DNA of 64,000 bases, taken from the NCBI GenBank assembly GCA_965113315.1, contig OZ220370.1; one strand, given 5' to 3'. The DNA comes from Podarcis vaucheri. Its lineage: Eukaryota. Position numbers and translations under genes: made by a program. Position 1 is the stretch's first letter, and each line of letters begins with the position of its first letter. The notes under the pieces are model-generated. The model was not told the origin of the DNA. It was given only the letters and a program-made list of their open reading frames with translations, and did no database searches. Below are positions 16,555 through 40,141 of this stretch, in pieces.

Positions 16555-16605
<51 letters not shown>

Positions 16606-17040
16606 TTATTTATACCCTACCCATCTGGCTGGGTTTCCCCAGCTACTCTGGGCAGCTTCCAACAAAACACTAAAATACAATAACCTATGAAACAGTAAAA
16701 GCTTCCCTAAACAGGGCTGCCTTCAGATGTCTTTTAAAAGTTTGGTAGTTATTTTTCTCTTTGACATCTGGTGGGAGGGCATTGAAGCATTGTCACACAG
16801 AAGATGGAATGAATTTGTCTTCCGTTGCTCCAGAGGGTAGGATCAAAAGTGTTCACATTGAAAGAAGAAAGATTTCAACTGAGCATTAGGAAGTTCTTCC
16901 TGAAGGTAAAAACTGTTGACAGTGGGACAGTCAACCTTGGAAGGTGGTGAATTTTCCATTAGAAGCTGGATGGCCATATCTTAGGGAATGCTGAAGGGGT
17001 AGTTTTCCTGCATCAGTAACAGTTTGGGCTAGGTGACCTT
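16378..17040 (+). mobile_element. CR1 LINE 3' remnant interrupted by an L2 tail insertion
   Basis: CR1-like motifs (TGTCAAGTTCTGGGCA; GCTCCAGAGGGTAGGA; CATTAGGAAG..TTCCTGA) occur on both sides of the 16555-16783 insert. Confidence 0.7.
16555..16783 (-). mobile_element. 5'-truncated L2-clade LINE with long (AAT)n tail
   Basis: (AAT)n followed by TTTATACCC..CCCATCTGGCTGGG; same family at 23453, 34800 and 62636. Confidence 0.85.
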
Positions 17041-23452: not shown

Positions 23453-23501
<49 letters not shown>

Positions 23502-23689
23502 TAATTTATTATTTATACCCCGCCCATCTGGCTGGGCCTCCCCAGCCACTCTGGGCAGCTTCCATAGAAACAAAAAATACACTAAAATATCACAAGTTAA
23601 AAACTTCCCTGAACAGGGCTGCCTTAAGATGTCTTCTGAATGTCAGGTAGTTGTTTATCGCTTTGACATCTGATGGGAAGGCGTTCCAC
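23453..23689 (-). mobile_element. 5'-truncated L2-clade LINE with (AAT)n tail
   Basis: Same family as 16555-16783. Confidence 0.85.
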
Positions 23690-25815: not shown

Positions 25816-26148
25816 TGTGCTTTTCGAAAATGAATCTGGCCCTACAGGGATTCCATTCAAATGCTTTAAAACCTTCAGTTTTTCTCCCCCAAGCATTTGA
25901 AAGAACACCCAAACATCCTGTTCCTTCTGCTGCCCATTAACCTAAGGGAAAACTCACCTTGTGGTCCAGCACAGAGTAGCAGGTGGTGGAAGCAGCTCCC
26001 TTGAAGATGGGAGAGGCCCACCACCAAACTCCTCCTTTCCCCCCTGACTCTTGCAATATGAAGATGTTGGTGGCATACCAACATGGGCAGAGTTTTGTTG
26101 AGTTTGGAACTTAACAGGTTAAGTTGTTCCCATGATGCCACACCATTC

Positions 26149-26156
26149 TGACGTCA
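26149..26156. promoter_or_regulatory. Palindromic CRE (TGACGTCA) in the LTR
   Basis: Exact motif, also at 29459-29466. Function not shown. Confidence 0.4.
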
Positions 26157-26380
26157 GGTTTCAAAGCTGGGAGGAGTTTGGGAGGAGTGTTTTCAGTTCT
26201 CACTCTATGCTGTGAGGGGAAAGGAAGCAGTTTTGTCATGGCTGCAAGTAGTCCTGGTTTTTCCGGAGATTTGTTGGAATAAACAACTGTAAATAGACAA
26301 ACCTGTACTCTGTGTGTTTGTCAAAGGACGTGATAGCTTTTACCCGCTGTGTAACTCTGCTGGGCGTGACTGGACGACGG

Positions 26381-26462
26381 AGCTAAGTGGCGCAGCTGAG
26401 GGAAGCGTGCCGGACGGCAATAAAGAGCTAAAGCTAATTGTGGATCGTAAATCAATTAGCGA
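26381..26462 (+). ncRNA. tRNA-iMet-like module inside the LTR (copy at 29691-29772)
   Basis: AGCtaAGTGGCGCAGC[tgag]GGAAGCGTGCcGGaC compared with vertebrate tRNAiMet AGCAGAGTGGCGCAGCGGAAGCGTGCTGGGC (recalled sequence); T-loop-like GGATCGTAA versus GGATCGAAA. Not a functional tRNA, because the anticodon arm is replaced. Confidence 0.7.
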
Positions 26463-26494
26463 GGGTCACGCCAAACAATCAATCAATTTCTACA

Positions 26495-26503
26495 GGTTAT
26501 GGG
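26495..26503 (+). promoter_or_regulatory. Primer-binding site, half-tRNAiMet type
   Basis: GGTTATGGG directly after the LTR is complementary to CCCATAACC in the tRNAiMet anticodon arm, as in Drosophila copia-type elements. Confidence 0.85.
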
Positions 26504-26746
26504 TAACCTTAATCACCGATCGTAAAGCTGTCACTGGAGGCTGCTGAAAGCTTTGATCTGCGGTGAAGAGCAGAGAAGCATGGCAGGAGGCGGAGGCCGG
26601 AATCTGAGGCAAGCGGCTAGTTGAAAGACACAGAGGTTTGCCTGTGTTGCTGCGGAGCTGAGAGCAGCAGGGAATCGTTTCTCCACGCCAGAGGAGCTGG
26701 TGATTTTGTGAGTACAGCTTGGGGCGTCTTGGGAGAACGGGAGAAC

Positions 26747-29122
26747 ATGACAGATGGCCAGGAGGTGTTTCAAGCTCCGTTTGAACAGCTTGAGGAACTC
26801 ACCGCCCAAGCGTGGAATACCTGGGCAAGAAGGGTGAGAGCGTGGTTTTTAGCCACGGAAGTGTGGGACATTTCCCAGAGGGAACCAGTGCAACTGGTGG
26901 ACAGAGATGTCAGAGATGCAGAGACACTGCAATCTGCTTCTCTGGAGGAGAAAATGCAGAGGGAGAAAGCTATGAGAGCTGAGATCTGCATGTTGCGGGC
27001 AGGTGTGCACGCCAAGTTGCAACAGCACCTGGAGAGCGTTGAATCTGCGTGTGAGGCCTGGAGAGTGCTGAAACGTCTGTGTGAAGACTCAGCAGGAGGC
27101 CAAGGGCAGATGGAAGTTGAAAGCCTAGAGATGGCTGGAGCCCCTGTTCCTGATGATTTAGCCTCAAGGAGTGCTAGTGAGCAAGTCGGGGGGGCGGAGA
27201 ATTCCAAAGGCAAGTTTGAAAAGTTTTCCACTGTGCGTGCTGGAGTGGAGTTCAGAGGGGGCGGATCTGGCAAGGAGTGCTTTTCCGGAAGAAGGAGGGC
27301 CAGGCCAGCTGAAAAGAGCCCCAGGCAGTGTTTTTCCACTGGAGTTCGTCGTTGCTACGTGTGTAATGCAACGGGACATCTGCGTCGAGATTGCCCCCAC
27401 CGGAGCAGAGAGGCAAGACAGGATGTTGTCAAGGCCAACTCCCATGGGAACCAGTCGGGTTTCCATGGCAACCAGCCTGGGAGAGCAGCCAGGCGTGGGA
27501 CTGAGTCAGGTGGACGTGACCACAAGGAGGAGACGTATCAGATCACGGCTAGTCTAGCTTTGTCTGAAGACAGCTGTGGGACAGGCTCAGAGCTTTGTTT
27601 TGTTTTAGACTCTGCAGCAAACTGCAATTTGATTCCAGAGGAACCTGCTGTCGAGAGGTGGAATTGCAAGGCAATTCCTGCTGGGAAGACTGTACTTTTC
27701 GCAAATGGACAGAAAAGAAATGTGACTAATGCTGTAAATGTGCATTTTTCTGTTTTACAGGAGACGTTGGAGTGTTGTACCGTTCCTGGGATGCACCACT
27801 GTCTTTTATCTGTGCCTTATTTGTTAAAAAAGGGGTTCAAGGTTTGTTTCGAAGATGCTGTCTGCACAATCTCCAAAGGAGGGAGGATGCTTGCCAAGGT
27901 TAAAAAGGGGCAGAATGATCTCTTTATTCTTAAATCACCTCTGGAGGGTGAGGGGAAGGTTGGGAAAGCACAGGCTCTACGTGCTGAAATCAAAAGTCAT
28001 GAGTCATGTGTACATGCTTGGCATGCACGAACAGCTCATGGTTCTCTAGAAGAACTGCAGGTGCTGCCTGAGGTTTCCAAAGGTTGTCAAATCTCAGAAT
28101 GTGGATATGCTGTGAATTGTGAAACTTGCAAACTGGCAAAGGTAAAGGGATGCAGTTATCCAAAAGTAGAGAGGGTAACCACAAGACCTTTTGAAATAAT
28201 CCACATAGATTTGTGGGGTCCTGTAAGGGAACCAAGTCTGGGAGGGTCAAGGTTTCTGCTGATGGTGCAGGATGATTTTACGCAGAATACCTGGACTCTT
28301 GGTCTCAAATCCAAGGATGATGCAGCACAGCTGATCAAAGGGTGGATTGAGGAGGTGGAACTCAGGTTCTCCACCAGGGTGCAAGCAGTCACCAGTGACA
28401 GAGGAGCTCAGTTTACAGGGTCTGCTTTGCAGAAGTTCTTTCACAAGAAAGGGATACGTCACACAGTGACTTCACCCAATCAGAGGGGAGTGTCAGAGCT
28501 CAGGTGTCAGGCTCTGGTTAAAACTGCACAGGTGTTGCTGAAAGATTCTGGGTTACCTCCAAGGTTTTGGCTGGAGGCAATCAAGTATGTGAGCTTCACC
28601 TGGAATCGTACCTACAATTCAATGGTAGGTGACACACCGTTTGGGTTGTTGCATGGCAGGAAACCCCGGATTCATTTTTTGCGTATGTTTGGGTCAGGTG
28701 CATCTGTGCCAGTACCTACTGCTTTGCAGGGGCCAGATGGATCCAAGTTCCGGAAAATGATCTTCTGCGGGTATGAGCCAGAAGCACGTGCATGGAGGTT
28801 TGCATTTCCATCAGGTGATCAGAGTAAGCTACTGATCAGTAAACACGCTGAGTTCTATGAGCAGGATAAAAGGTCAAAAACTGCTGTCATGCGTGATGTG
28901 CTCTCAGAATGTCTATCTGATTCTGAGGAGGAAAGGGAGGCAGAGGCTGATCCCGGTGATGAGGGCCAGGTCCAAGATCAGGATTCAGAATCCGATGATG
29001 ACGATCAGGTAACTGACCAAAGTCAGGAACAGGAGGAGGTATCTGTAGTTTCTCCACAAGATGTTAAGAGAACACCCAAAAGCGAGCCCAGTTCTCCTGT
29101 GAGTGTAATGGAGAGGATTTGA
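26747..29122 (+). CDS. Copia-like Gag-protease-integrase polyprotein without RT (791 aa from the first in-frame ATG)
   Basis: Gag N-terminal W..W..R..A motif and A.EAW..L motif; CCHC knuckle CYVCNATGHLRRDC (27353-27394); protease-like FVLDSAA (D at 27608); HHCC WHARTAH..CETC; integrase IHIDLWGP / TSDRG / GVSE; FGS..IFCGY C-terminal domain. Confidence 0.9.
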   Translation: MTDGQEVFQAPFEQLEELTAQAWNTWARRVRAWFLATEVWDISQREPVQLVDRDVRDAETLQSASLEEKMQREKAMRAEICMLRAGVHAKLQQHLESVESACEAWRVLKRLCEDSAGGQGQMEVESLEMAGAPVPDDLASRSASEQVGGAENSKGKFEKFSTVRAGVEFRGGGSGKECFSGRRRARPAEKSPRQCFSTGVRRCYVCNATGHLRRDCPHRSREARQDVVKANSHGNQSGFHGNQPGRAARRGTESGGRDHKEETYQITASLALSEDSCGTGSELCFVLDSAANCNLIPEEPAVERWNCKAIPAGKTVLFANGQKRNVTNAVNVHFSVLQETLECCTVPGMHHCLLSVPYLLKKGFKVCFEDAVCTISKGGRMLAKVKKGQNDLFILKSPLEGEGKVGKAQALRAEIKSHESCVHAWHARTAHGSLEELQVLPEVSKGCQISECGYAVNCETCKLAKVKGCSYPKVERVTTRPFEIIHIDLWGPVREPSLGGSRFLLMVQDDFTQNTWTLGLKSKDDAAQLIKGWIEEVELRFSTRVQAVTSDRGAQFTGSALQKFFHKKGIRHTVTSPNQRGVSELRCQALVKTAQVLLKDSGLPPRFWLEAIKYVSFTWNRTYNSMVGDTPFGLLHGRKPRIHFLRMFGSGASVPVPTALQGPDGSKFRKMIFCGYEPEARAWRFAFPSGDQSKLLISKHAEFYEQDKRSKTAVMRDVLSECLSDSEEEREAEADPGDEGQVQDQDSESDDDDQVTDQSQEQEEVSVVSPQDVKRTPKSEPSSPVSVMERI

Positions 29123-29461
29123 AAACGCTTTAAGTCAGAGGGGGAATCCTGTAATGCAGAGGACACACCTGCTGGTGATGGGGAAGCATCTGAGTTTGTG
29201 CCCAGAAGGTCTAGTCGCACAACAAAGGGCGTTCCACCTGAAAGATACCAGGCAACAAGTGCGTGGGCAAGATTCGCACAGTGTGATTCTGGGAGTGTTG
29301 AAGGGGTTCAACAGGTGCCTGGGAAAGATGCCGGAAAGAGGCACAAGGCAAAGGGGAAAGTGTTGAACTCAAAAGGGTCTTGTCAGAATGTGCGGCAAGG
29401 GGGGGTGTTGAGTTTGGAACTTAACAGGTTAAGTTGTTCCCATGATGCCACACCATTCTGA
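29123..29461 (+). pseudogene. In-frame continuation of the polyprotein beyond a single TGA
   Basis: The same frame continues KRFKSE..RRSSRTTKGVPPERY (Copia post-integrase RRS.R..P.RY motif) and a degenerate EP.S..E..W..A-like RT leader, then runs through the PPT into the 3' LTR. Confidence 0.7.
29397..29405 (+). promoter_or_regulatory. Polypurine tract
   Basis: AAGGGGGGG immediately 5' of the 3' LTR. Confidence 0.85.
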
Positions 29462-29804
29462 CGTCAGTTTTCGAAGCTGGGAGGAGTTTGGGAGGAGTGT
29501 TTTCAGTTCTCACTCTATGCTGTGAGGGGAAAGGAAGCAGTTTTGTCATGGCTGCAAGTAGTCCTGGTTTTTCCGGAGATTTGTTGGAATAAACAACTGT
29601 AAATAGACAAACCTGTACTCTGTGTGTTTGTCAAAGGACGTGATAGCTTTTACCCGCTGTGTAACTCTGCTGGGCGTGACTGGACGACGGAGCTAAGTGG
29701 CGCAGCTGAGGGAAGCGTGCCGGATGGCAATAAAGAGCTAAAGCTAATTGTGGATCGTAAATCAATTAGCGAGGGTCACGCCAAACAATCAATCAATTTC
29801 TACA
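29406..29804 (+). repeat. 3' LTR
   Basis: Direct repeat of 26096-26494. Confidence 0.97.
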
Positions 29805-31812
29805 AGTTTTCCCATTCCCTGCTGAGATTTGCCCCTGCTGCCAGCATCTTCACTTTACAATGGACAGAGGAAGGCTAGACTTAGTGGACCTCTCTCAACT
29901 TTGTGGCAACCCTTCACCATCCACAGACATCTCTCTGGCTCCAAGGTGAGTTCTTTGCTCATTGCGGGGGCGGGGATGAGGCAGTAAGTAACAATGGGTA
30001 AGTGGAGCACCTTTGCTTTAATTTTCCCAACACCCCTAAATGCTGGCGCTGTCCCATAAGGCTGAAGCTCTCTTTCAAGTCAGTAGAAGCTACTGTACAT
30101 ATTGTAGGATAGTGGCAAGGAAGTTACTGAGTTGTGAAACAAAAAGGCCCTGTTTGCACCTTGTCTTTGATATGAGCTCAGTAAGCTACTATCAGCTTTG
30201 GCTCTACTCTCCACAATAATTTAACAACAGTGACCTACCTCTGACTTAATCAAATTACTAGTCTGTTACAGAATCCCCCCCCCCTTTAAATCTGGTCGGC
30301 AATAACTATCTCCTTATGGAATTGATAGCCTGGCTTTCAGCATTATTATGTTCAGTCACAGCGATACTCATCAGCTTTGTATGAACTACATGTTAATTGC
30401 AAGGCAACAAGATGGTGTTATCCATGAGTAGCTAGCCCAAGAGTGTACAGGGATGTATACTCCCTCCTGCACTGAAACACAGATGGAAATGCACACCCCC
30501 ACCAATGCAAATAAGCGCAGATAGTGACACAAATCTTTACATACATCAGACGTGCATTGTATCTGGAAGCTTTGCCCATGGAAAGCTTACTATTTGCACT
30601 GATCTCTCTTGCTTCTAATGCTTCCCCCTAATGCCCTACTTTAACAAAACCCAGGCAGCTAGAAAACGCAGCAGTGGTGCCGTCCAACAGCAGCACAAGG
30701 CCAAAACAAACACGAGTGACTTGCTGACATCCACTACAATTAAGAACTAAAGAACAGAAATTCGTTGGGGGGGGGGAGTTAAGTGGGACAGTCTTTGGAA
30801 AACATAGCTTTCCCTCTCAATAGTGGGGCATCTGGTGACATTAGTTGAAGTTCTAAAAAAACCTCCCCATGGTCTCTATAAAATGCAGCAATTTTTTAGA
30901 AAAAAGAAACTGTCGTGCATTTGAGTTTGCTTGTTGCCTGGACATGCATGTCCATGTTTGTGTATTAGATATTGTTTAAACAGAACACACCTTTAACGTG
31001 ATGGCTTCTTTCTAGATGGGAAAAGAAAGATGGTGATCAATTTATTTTATTTACAAAGAAATGACTCCATCCTGCCTTCTTTCTTTCTTTCATTATTTAT
31101 TGAGTAAGATAATAGCTTATGGTACATACACGGAGCCAGCTGTTTGCAGGATGCCAAGAGCAGGTGGTCGGGGAGGCCTCTGATGAATTGCAAAAGACAC
31201 TTACCAGCTGCTATCTCTGTGTGAAATGAGCAAACCTGCAAAATCTTTATTTTCAATTGGATTGTACTTTTAAGTAAGCAAGGGAGACAGCCAGTATAAC
31301 TGCAAACCATGACCAACAACAACCCCCAAAAATGTGCAAACACAAGTGATTAGCATACCAGTATTTCAAAATACTGGACGGCTAACAAGCCCATGGTTTG
31401 CAAAGCGAGAGAAAGAGAAAAGGAGGTTTGGGTGTGTGCTGGTTGGTGGGTGGAGGAAGGAGGCATGAGGACGGCAACAGGGAAATGTCTGATGGGCCTT
31501 AATGGCCTTCTGTGGAATCCTAACAATTCCCACACATTCACTTCATCAACCATTCAGACTCCTAAACAACAAAGCTGGGCTTTGAACTTCCTCTTTTGCA
31601 TTTATGTAGGGCACTCTTGTGCGCTGCCTCACCAGGGTGCAATCCTTTGGTGATCACCACAGCCTCAAATGGTCACTGATGAGATGCAGGGATAATGGGT
31701 TACAAAGACAGACATTAATAAGGTAAGATAAGAGAGGGGAGGTTTATTAATTTTTCAAGTAAAGTTAGGATGCCCAAGGGCACAGTAAAGCTGCAAAGAA
31801 TCTAGTGAGGAA

Positions 31813-31968
31813 NNNNNNNNNNNNNNNNNNNNNNNNNNNNNNNNNNNNNNNNNNNNNNNNNNNNNNNNNNNNNNNNNNNNNNNNNNNNNNNNNNNNNNNN
31901 NNNNNNNNNNNNNNNNNNNNNNNNNNNNNNNNNNNNNNNNNNNNNNNNNNNNNNNNNNNNNNNNNNNN
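31813..31968. other. Assembly gap (156 N)
   Basis: Run of n. Confidence 0.99.
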
Positions 31969-32991: not shown

Positions 32992-34799
32992 AGTGCTGGG
33001 TACTGGGTGCTGAGCTGAGAGAGCACTGTCTCAAAACCTGGTAAGTAAGATGCTGGGCTTTGAGAAGGAGGCCTGAGGCCTCCTGCCTCCTTCCAAAAGC
33101 CTACTTAACACTTTCCTGGGGTTGGAAAGGAGGTGGGAGGGTTCTAGGACCCTGCCAGAGCTCTCATACCTCCTTCCCAAAGCTTGGTGCATCCTTATCC
33201 ACCTTTGGAAATGCAGAACAGGGGTTGGAGGGTGCACCAAGTTTTGGCCTCACAAAGGGTGTCAAAGTACCCAAATCTGCCACTGCTACAACTCCCATCA
33301 TCCTTCCCCATTGGCCATGCTGGCTAGCCTGATGGGAGTTGAAGTCCAACAACATCTGGCAGTCACTATATTGGGGAAGGCTGGAGTATATGCTGCAAGG
33401 TAGACCCAGGTCACCAGCTGCATTTATGGGTATGGACATTAAGAAAGTAACAAACTTATGTGTCAACATGCATCGTTGTACAGCTCCCGACCTGTTCAAA
33501 GTTTTTGTGTAGCAGTAGAGAAGCAGTGGCATATGAGGGGAATTCTAGCTCCACATATTCTTATAGAATCAGAGGCAATAGTATTTCTGAATACCAGTTG
33601 CTGGAAACCACAGGAGGCGTTGGGACCTACTTGTTGGTTTCCTACAGGCATTTGGTTAGCCAATGTGAGAACAGGATGCTGGACCAAACAGGCCATTGAG
33701 CTGATCCAGCAGGCTCTTTTTATGTTTTTAAACCAATTTATATGCTTCCACAATGTTTAGAAGCCACTTTTAAAAAGACGACTAATGGAAGGATGTCAAT
33801 GCAATATAAGAAAAATAATTGTGTAGGAATTTCATTTTAATATATAGGTGAACTGGATCTTTAAAATACCAAGAAGTAGATTTAGCAGAAGTAGAGCGAT
33901 ATCCCATTTCTAATCTTTCCTCCAGTATTTGAGATGCAACTTTAGATCTGGAACCTGCAACTTAAGCCCAAATAACCCACGTGTTCTTGTGTTTTATTGA
34001 CTACTTGGGATCACTATCAATATTACTACTATAGGACCATGCCCTTTCCTTCATTTAGTAATCCTTACCATCTGTATGACATACTCAAGAACTCAAGAGT
34101 CTTTCACATGCATTATGCAGTTGAAATCCCTATGCCAGGGATAGCCAACCCTATAGATGACATTGGAAAAACTCCTTTAGAGACTGGCAAAGCTAAAACA
34201 ACAATGCAATGCTTAATTGGGAGAGAAAAACATGTTAGGAAAAAATGGTGCATTGGGGGAGCTTGCCCATGTGTCTGTGTTCATCATCCACCCTGTTGCA
34301 CATTTCAAGTGCCTGCACTCTTATACCAATTTAACAGTCATGGAGAATTCTGGGAAATGTAGTTTGTTAGGGGTGCTGGTAATTGTAGCTCTGTGAGGTC
34401 AACATTTCCTAGGATTCTTTGAGGGAAGCCATAACTATTAAGGTGGCATAGGAATGCTTTAAATGTGACCATGAACTCTACACCCTGCATTGTAATTCTG
34501 ATTCACCTCTGCAGGCCACAGCAACAACCACCGCAGCCACATTTTACAAGCACATCATGTCTCTATGGTAACATGAGATAAAAATCACAGCTGGGATCTC
34601 ATTGTTATCGCTCTGAAACATGTTAGAAATCCGACTTATGCAGTAAGCTCAGTTAGAACACCTTGTCAGTTGTGGTGGGTTGTGTTTCAGACAAACTTTC
34701 CAAAATAGGTCAGGGACAAGGAAAACCTGCTAGACACCAAATTGTTTCCTTGAGAAAAGAAATCATAATTAGGAATGCTATTGCAGCTATAACATTATA

Positions 34800-35086
34800 T
34801 AATAATAATAATAATAATTTATTATTTGTACCCCGCCCATCTGGCTGGGTTTCCCCAGCCACTCTGGGCGGCTTCCACAGAAACCAAAAAACACTAAAAT
34901 ATCATACATGAAAAGCTTCCCTGAATAGGGCCGCCTTAAGATGTCTTCTGAATGTCAGGTAGTTGTCCATCACCTTGACATCCAATGGGAGGGCATTCCA
35001 CAGGGCGGGCGCCACCACCGAAAAGGCCCTCTGCCTGGTTCCCTGTAGCTTCGCTTCTCGTAATGAGGGAACCGCCAGAAGGCCCT
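34800..35086 (-). mobile_element. 5'-truncated L2-clade LINE with (AAT)n tail
   Basis: Minus-strand RAFSVVAPALWNALP..FRRHLKAALF, an L2 ORF2 C-terminus. Confidence 0.88.
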
Positions 35087-39791: not shown

Positions 39792-40141
39792 GGGACGCAA
39801 GATGGCGCTGTGGGTTAAACCACAGAGCCTAGGACTTTCAGATCAGAAGGTCAGCGGTTCGAATCCCCGCGATGGGGTAAGCTCCCGTTGCTCGGTCCCT
39901 GCTCCTGCCAACCTAGCAGTTCGAAAGCATGTCAAAGTGCAAGTAGATAAATAGGTACCGCTTCGGCGGGAAGGTAAACGGCATTTCCGTGCGCTGCTCT
40001 GGTTCGCCAGAAGCGCCTTGGTCATGCTGGCCACATGACCCAGAAGCTGTACGCCGGCTCCCTTGGCCAATAAAGCGAGATGAAAGCCGCAACCCCAGAG
40101 TCGGTCACAACTGGACCTAATGGTCAGGGGTCCATTTACCA
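39792..40141 (+). mobile_element. Sauria (Squam1) SINE, full length, 14-bp TSD
   Basis: A and B boxes and Sauria body; TTATGAATATAAAA at 39778-39791 and 40142-40155. Confidence 0.93.

Follow-up and report, generated by a model that had tools for sequence, protein, structure and literature searches.

A remodelled copy of tRNA-iMet, the predicted primer tRNA, in both LTRs of a non-autonomous Copia element of the lizard Podarcis vaucheri

Background

Where does a tRNA-like sequence found within both long terminal repeats (LTRs) of a retrotransposon come from, and what does it do there today, when the tRNA in question is the very one predicted to prime the element's reverse transcription? The locus that raises this question lies in a stretch of 64,000 nt from the genome of Podarcis vaucheri (contig OZ220370.1 of assembly GCA_965113315.1), which is referred to below as the window and whose positions are used throughout. 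A sequence-only reading of the window had proposed that each LTR of a Copia element carries a sense-strand likeness of tRNA-iMet, that this module could be either an internal Pol III promoter or a tRNA mimic, and that no description of such a feature in vertebrate Copia elements was known.

The claim of novelty calls for some qualification. In 2024 Kojima reported the Helenus TRIMs, whose LTRs contain tRNA-derived modules and which occur in fungi, animals and a plant, remarked that "not a few" LTRs in Repbase contain part of a tRNA, and grouped Helenus, Cassandra and Ajax together as TRIMp3 (PMC10886601). The insertion of a SINE into an LTR was proposed there as the origin of LTRs that bear tRNA or 5S sequences, and no relation was found between the tRNA-like sequence of an LTR and the primer site (PMC10886601). 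Copia elements of lizards or other vertebrates are not among the cases listed in that paper (PMC10886601).

Results and discussion

A Copia element without reverse transcriptase

The module resides in a non-autonomous Ty1/copia derivative of 3.7 kb (3709 bp in full) that encodes gag, protease and integrase and has no reverse transcriptase (Table 1). Structural hallmarks of Ty1/copia are present, namely two LTRs with TG..CA ends, a 5-bp target duplication (the length typical of this group), a primer binding site (PBS) after the 5' LTR and a polypurine tract before the 3' LTR. Within the 791-codon frame (about 2.4 kb) one finds CCHC, rve and SH3-like domains, whereas reverse transcriptase and RNase H are absent across the whole element. 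The best relatives are Copia polyproteins. A first protein word search returned only two distant, plant-like Copia matches, and in an exhaustive HMMER search the nearest named relatives came from Podarcis wall lizards. One of these, a protein of Podarcis muralis (P0005, XP_077785850.1), is 71% identical over the integrase C-terminus and leads from there, as in the element described here, into the polypurine/LTR junction. Since the P. muralis relative has the same layout without reverse transcriptase, the element represents an established non-autonomous Copia lineage and no one-off deletion; judging from its sequenced relatives, this gag and integrase lineage is old and diversified. The long frame is closed by an in-frame stop at 29120-29122, beyond which the same frame stays open for about 95 further codons, up to the LTR; the annotated P. 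muralis protein continues past the equivalent position.

Table 1. Features of the element and of its tRNA-iMet-derived module, in window coordinates
Feature	Position	Strand	Basis or remark
Target-site duplication AGTTT (5 bp), left copy	26091..26095	+	Read off the sequence
5' LTR, 399 nt, TG...CA ends	26096..26494	+	Aligned to the 3' LTR
tRNA-iMet-derived module, 5' LTR	26381..26462	+	Local and global alignment against shuffles
Exact 11-nt block AGTGGCGCAGC (tRNA-iMet nt 6-16)	26386..26396	+	Sequence and alignment
4-nt insert TGAG in the former D loop	26397..26400	+	Alignment; common to relatives (GAG before GGAAGCG)
Exact 10-nt block GGAAGCGTGC (tRNA-iMet G18-C27)	26401..26410	+	Alignment
AATAAA, aligned to anticodon-loop letters CATAAC; putative poly(A) signal	26419..26424	+	Alignment; kept in related subfamilies
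8-bp hairpin GCTAATTG/CAATTAGC	26434..26460 (arms 26434-26441/26453-26460)	+	Predicted fold
T-arm remnant TGGATCGTAAATCA	26441-26454	+	Alignment; inside the loop region of the 8-bp hairpin
PBS GGTTATGGG	26495-26503 (feature 26495..26508 including TAACC)	+	Reverse complement of tRNA-iMet nt 32-40
Frame for gag (CCHC), protease region and integrase (rve, SH3-like)	26747..29122	+	In-frame stop at end
Polypurine tract AAGGGGGGG	29397..29405	+	Abuts the 3' LTR
3' LTR, 399 nt, TG...CA ends	29406..29804	+	Aligned to the 5' LTR
tRNA-iMet-derived module, 3' LTR	29691..29772	+	Differs from the 5' module at one site (T at 29725, C at 26415)
Target-site duplication AGTTT (5 bp), right copy	29805-29809		Read off the sequence

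When Logan contigs of three DNA samples, together with the raw reads of one RNA run (X24), were aligned to positions 26000-26800, the left flank (26000-26096) proved to be single-copy in all three DNA samples (depths of 87, 47 and 16) and to agree at each of 97 nt. In these samples the contigs of the left flank stop matching at 26095-26096 yet continue for another 123-531 letters, a break that fits an empty site, so that the insertion would be absent or polymorphic in the three samples. This pattern agrees with the 99.2% identity of the LTR pair (3 mismatches in 399 nt) in suggesting a recent insertion. The RNA run contributed few reads, which come mostly from diverged relatives and in which transcript ends could not be mapped.

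Apart from the two LTRs, the 64-kb window contains no further copies of the element. Scans of metagenomes and viral sequences with patterns from the LTR or the module gave no matches, a search of viral contigs with the element protein and with an alignment of eight Copia proteins gave no confirmed related locus, and a spurious 77-codon frame of the LTR, used as a protein query for translated relatives, gave no candidates. The window also holds three copies, 70-86% alike, of an unrelated dispersed repeat some 200 nt long (16583-16787, 23486-23689 and 34799-35001), and a run of N at 31813-31968, which is an assembly gap or a masked stretch.

Similarity of the LTR to the primer tRNA

The 72-nt vertebrate tRNA-iMet given in PMC8216282 was used as the reference, a zebrafish 5' fragment being identical to it over 30 nt. 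All of the motifs picked out in the sequence-only reading, AATAAA and the 8-bp stem included, were found in place, and alignment to the published tRNA confirmed its two exact blocks separated by a 4-nt insertion in the D loop. In the local alignment (score 32), nt 6-29 of tRNA-iMet, counted as string positions, are matched by AGTGGCGCAGC and, after a gap of 4 nt, by GGAAGCGTGC, which is followed by a single mismatch and GG. This is the top tRNA-iMet match on either strand of the 64-kb window, and when the LTR was shuffled 5000 times with dinucleotides preserved, the best score on either strand was 29, so that the proposed likeness in each LTR is borne out. Elongator tRNA-Met and tRNA-Lys reach scores of only 12-17. 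The first exact block spans the end of the acceptor strand, nt 8-9, the 5' strand of the D stem and the start of the D loop, that is, the A-box region, and a 25-mer that crosses both blocks occurs twice, once per LTR, where none would be expected by chance.

When all 72 nt of the tRNA are aligned globally to the module of the 5' LTR, 55 tRNA positions are identical; the score, to which the 5' part contributes most, was again reached by no shuffle out of 5000. Similarity begins at nt 1 of the tRNA, where the LTR has AGCTAAG, most sister copies AGCTGAG and the tRNA AGCAGAG. The 3' half is less clear: the T-loop-like ATCGTAA is indeed present at 26444-26450, but the significance of the T-arm remnant by itself is weak (score 16; p=0.06 without constraint, and 0.02 if the hit has to be collinear with the 5' match). 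Taken as aligned, this stretch of both LTRs is a remodelled sense copy of tRNA-iMet.

The second part of the observation concerns the primer. The 9-nt PBS, which lies immediately 3' of the 5' LTR, is the reverse complement of the anticodon loop and two stem bases of tRNA-iMet, and the tRNA copied in the LTR and the predicted primer tRNA are therefore the same species, as had been proposed. To our knowledge, a sense copy of the tRNA in the LTRs has not been reported for copia or Ty5. Like the lizard element, Drosophila copia and yeast Ty5 have a PBS directed at the anticodon-loop region of tRNA-iMet and not at the 3' end, and many fungal Copia elements are primed in the same way (PMC10886601). 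The complementarity of the lizard PBS extends over only 9 nt, as compared with the half-tRNA priming of copia and Ty5.

Together with the next five bases the PBS forms a palindrome, GGTTA-TGGG-TAACC (26495-26508), for which zero variants are listed in the aligned related contigs and RNA reads; positions 26510, 26519, 26521 and 26527 do vary. Scans for duplexes between the tRNA and the leader, and between the module and the internal region, yielded nothing above shuffled controls, and additional tRNA contacts of the Ty1 type and a cyclisation partner were accordingly dropped as candidates. An 11-bp long-range helix with one G.U pair, GUGAUAGCUUU/AAAGCUGUCAC, is predicted between 26330-26340 and 26523-26533. 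It would enclose the entire R-U5-PBS region and is reminiscent of retroviral U5-leader stems; the z-score of the whole fold is only -1.05.

The module in related LTRs

The first 60 nt or so of the LTR (26108-26161) are covered at a depth near 200,000 in the DNA samples, which implies that the start of U3 is common to thousands of LTR copies from many subfamilies; it is far more abundant than the remaining LTR. Between 26324 and 26431 the depth is about 150-2500 in X1 and X3, and about 390-400 over the module part (26378-26431). The latter corresponds to roughly 4-25 single-copy equivalents in these two samples, and the exact subfamily is thus small. Its copies retain both blocks. Two substitutions are frequent among sister copies, 26385 A>G, which is a change towards the tRNA, and 26408 T>C, which converts a G.U into a G-C pair under either hairpin model.

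For the main related subfamilies, which are known here as 30-letter contig ends and not as full LTRs, the alignment ends at 26322 and picks up again at 26433. The unaligned ends that precede 26433 read GAGTGGAAGCGTGCCGGGCAGCAATAAA plus two letters (agreement 0.93-0.99) and themselves match tRNA-iMet, with a score of 26 against nt 14-31 (0 of 2000 shuffles) and of 22 against nt 14-40 (3 of 2000). They preserve the GGGC of the anticodon stem better than does the 5' LTR copy in the window, and they have the same GAG before GGAAGCG and AATAAA at the letters of the anticodon loop. Since these relatives match tRNA-iMet and share the TGAG-type insert, the module predates the split of the subfamilies, with AATAAA conserved. 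As far as the aligned contigs go, the module is a feature of the family, retained in many copies with an invariant AATAAA. In X2 only, a piece of about 30 nt (26386-26415, with C at 26408) appears at about 800x single-copy depth, a figure inferred from bin means and per-site depths, while its flanks remain unaligned; this island may represent a high-copy LTR subfamily that has retained just 26386-26415.

Could the resemblance nevertheless be due to chance? The module was, after all, picked from a whole window of 64 kb in which other matches to tRNA-iMet score 24-27. These other matches, however, are T-arms of SINEs or unrelated short matches, the score of the module is beyond the reach of the LTR shuffles, and the relatives independently match additional tRNA positions. 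Furthermore, the a-priori link to the PBS makes the comparison a single directed test. We find coincidence scarcely credible.

No predicted tRNA fold and an interrupted B box

Whatever its origin, the module no longer resembles a working tRNA or Pol III gene. At gathering thresholds Rfam has no match anywhere in the window, and searches of 501 nt and of 106 nt at E<=10 return noise matches only and no tRNA (RF00005 tested). ARAGORN calls no tRNA down to 80% thresholds, and at the module it finds nothing at the default, 80%, 60% or 40% settings; the 60% setting yields a false call at 26456-26538, just as it yields one on the reverse strand of a genuine tRNA. The predicted minimum-energy fold of the module consists of two plain hairpins (-27 kcal/mol, z=-2.3). 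In the first, a bulged 9-bp hairpin made of the former D arm and the TGAG insert, 26388-26397 are paired with the block at 26401-26410. The second hairpin has the perfect 8-bp stem GCTAATTG/CAATTAGC, which had been noted earlier as an alternative pairing and which indeed forms part of the optimum. Forcing a cloverleaf-like fold with acceptor and D stems gives -16.6 as against -24.9 kcal/mol for the optimum, a penalty of 8.3 kcal/mol, and the tRNA-like fold that had been suggested is not supported. The same is true of the supposedly compensatory acceptor pairing between the altered 5' end and TTAGC at 26456-26460: the stretch contains GCTAA three times, TTAGC is already taken by the perfect 8-bp hairpin, and in the majority of sister copies position 26385 is G while the opposite side is unchanged.

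The module might also be an internal Pol III promoter whose A and B boxes drive transcripts initiated in the LTR. Such a promoter has been shown in Cassandra and proposed for Helenus and TRIMp3, and the element would then be of the Helenus kind. The A-box region is near-intact (TGGCGCAGC is exact, with GG displaced by 4 nt), GGATCG lies 54 nt downstream, which is about the spacing in a tRNA, and it is upstream of about 26381-26386 that the relatives vary, the module and the sequence downstream of it being common to them. Against this, the B box GGATCGTAAATC contains one extra base, which puts A58 and C61 out of place. Downstream, beginning at 26704, there are also 20 stretches of at least four T, with which Pol III would be unable to make the 3.4-kb genomic RNA. 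The element is, moreover, about three times as long as the longest TRIMp3 (range 311-1263 bp), and neither ARAGORN nor Rfam sees a tRNA in it. The promoter proposal thus appears very unlikely to us.

Origin of the module: a proposed capture of the packaged primer

On balance we lean towards the view, which we hold to be somewhat probable, that the module arose when the element captured its packaged primer, tRNA-iMet, and that it would now serve as an ordinary R/U5 hairpin and poly(A) region. Were simple read-through into the primer the cause, the copy would be antisense and would lie downstream of U5. For the tRNA to appear in sense in the plus strand, minus-strand synthesis must once have been templated on a tRNA, and since tRNA-iMet is the RNA that these particles select as primer, a template switch onto a co-packaged tRNA-iMet would be the simplest route. 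Within the virus-like particle, a reverse transcriptase copying U5/R into minus strand would have switched onto the co-packaged tRNA, run off its 5' end and switched back, leaving a sense insert that begins at nt 1 of the tRNA, and normal replication would then have spread the insert to both LTRs. Subsequently the tRNA character would have been lost: the D arm and TGAG would have become the 9-bp hairpin, AAUAAA would have come to occupy the position of the anticodon loop CAUAAC, and the T arm would have turned into the 8-bp hairpin with a remnant of the T loop. The resulting layout would be a stable hairpin, AAUAAA about 70 nt before the end of the LTR, a second hairpin, 32 nt of U5 and the PBS. 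Base modifications of mature tRNA-iMet hinder reverse transcriptases, which makes the copying of a full tRNA less easy.

The AATAAA within the module is, judging from its position and conservation, a probable polyadenylation signal. A second AATAAA, at 26288-26293, adjoins a TAAATAG and may belong to the promoter instead. Conservation across subfamilies could equally reflect a function related to the tRNA, to which we return below.

One may also consider an origin at the DNA level, in which a SINE or retro-pseudogene derived from tRNA-iMet, or else part of a tRNA gene, was inserted into an ancestral LTR, the present role being the same as under capture. This is the route that Kojima proposes for LTRs bearing tRNA and 5S sequences (PMC10886601), and the core of the module is flanked twice by GAGCTAA (26380-26386 and 26425-31), which could be the scar of a duplication. 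The second GAGCTAA, however, is missing from the relatives, and the identity with the packaged primer would have to be a coincidence. The sole tRNA-derived SINE seen in the window is unlike tRNA-iMet, and we know of no SINE with a tRNA-iMet head in squamates. We therefore rate a DNA-level insertion as quite unlikely. The SINE in question is of the Sauria type and is present in two copies (215-520 and 39800-40120) with an intact-looking B box GGTTCGAATCC; having a different head, it was ruled out as the source of the module. These two copies account for the other moderate tRNA matches in the window, and their type is in keeping with a squamate genome.

A primer mimic?

A different answer to the question of function, as opposed to origin, is that the module might act as a functional mimic of the primer, presenting a region like the D arm of tRNA-iMet to a protein that handles the primer. 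The helper's Gag, integrase or reverse transcriptase, or a host protein that binds tRNA-iMet, have been considered as partners, and such a mimic would aid primer acquisition or packaging. Several observations are in line with this. The copied tRNA and the primer are one species, the module is retained in several subfamilies (including the block at ~800x depth in X2, whose flanks do not align), and both of the common sister substitutions keep pairing, the one at 26408 by creating G-C and the one at 26385 by moving towards the tRNA. There is also a viral precedent for primer mimicry in HIV-1 (PMC5113203, PMC5689005).

On the other side, a tRNA-like fold was not detected in the module, and complementarity between tRNA and leader, and between module and internal region, is within shuffled controls. 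The anticodon CAU, which is the main identity element for MetRS, is lost, AATAAA standing in its place. A role in R/U5 and polyadenylation, moreover, explains the conservation equally well. We consider a mimic, which none of these tests supports, to be unlikely on this analysis. In a more general form, one might suppose that the Copia lineage without reverse transcriptase keeps the remodelled copy of its own primer in R as a working cis-element, which could, for example, dock to the primer-selection or packaging machinery of the helper, or could allow minus-strand DNA to pair with the 5' part of the primer tRNA; this supposition seems to us decidedly doubtful.

Comparison with known small-RNA-derived LTR modules

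How does the captured-primer reading, which we prefer, sit with the systems already described? The Helenus TRIMs resemble the lizard element in being non-autonomous and in having a sense tRNA-derived sequence within their LTRs. They are, however, non-coding and only 311-1263 bp long, whereas the lizard element measures 3.7 kb and has a gag-protease-integrase frame of 2.4 kb. Their A and B boxes are recognisable, while in the lizard module the A box is near-intact and the B box (GGATCGTAAATC) is broken. Their tRNA sources are Thr, His, Ser, Ala, Pro and others, in contrast to the lizard module, which is derived from the element's own primer, tRNA-iMet. Finally, Helenus elements of animals apparently depend on Gypsy and have 4-bp duplications, whereas the lizard element is a vertebrate Copia with a 5-bp duplication. 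Of the features that define Helenus and TRIMp3, the lizard element thus has the tRNA-derived LTR sequence, but it is not a miniature non-coding element and does not have conserved A and B boxes.

The Cassandra TRIMs of plants are comparable in that they are non-autonomous and carry the sequence of a small-RNA gene, that of 5S rRNA, in both LTRs. In Cassandra, however, the 5S Pol III promoter is conserved and transcribed, while the lizard module has no evident Pol III competence. The tRNA-like element of HIV-1 offers a parallel of another kind, since there, too, a segment of genomic RNA close to the PBS is similar to the primer tRNA of the very element that carries it; this segment competes with tRNA-Lys3 for LysRS (PMC5113203, PMC5689005). 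The HIV-1 segment imitates the anticodon arm as well as the overall fold of the tRNA and binds LysRS, whereas in the lizard module the anticodon is lost and no tRNA fold is predicted. In other words, the former is a mimic by shape and the latter a copy by sequence. The lizard element differs from the cases described by Kojima in that it is a protein-coding vertebrate Copia element of 3.7 kb with a 5-bp duplication, has no intact B box, and carries a copy of its own primer tRNA.

Conclusions

Were the module a primer mimic, it would be without precedent outside retroviruses and would be relevant to the question of how helpers are parasitised by non-autonomous LTR elements. Should it be a working cis-element, the parasite element could compete with its autonomous helper. 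If, as we think somewhat probable, the module was captured, it would be a clear case of a retroelement that has incorporated its own packaged primer tRNA, likely by template switching within the particle, and in which the anticodon loop has turned into a polyadenylation signal and the arms of the tRNA into hairpins of the LTR. The small-RNA-derived LTR modules known from Cassandra, Helenus and Ajax would then extend to protein-coding Copia elements of vertebrates, and a second route to the origin of such modules, besides the insertion of SINEs, would be suggested.
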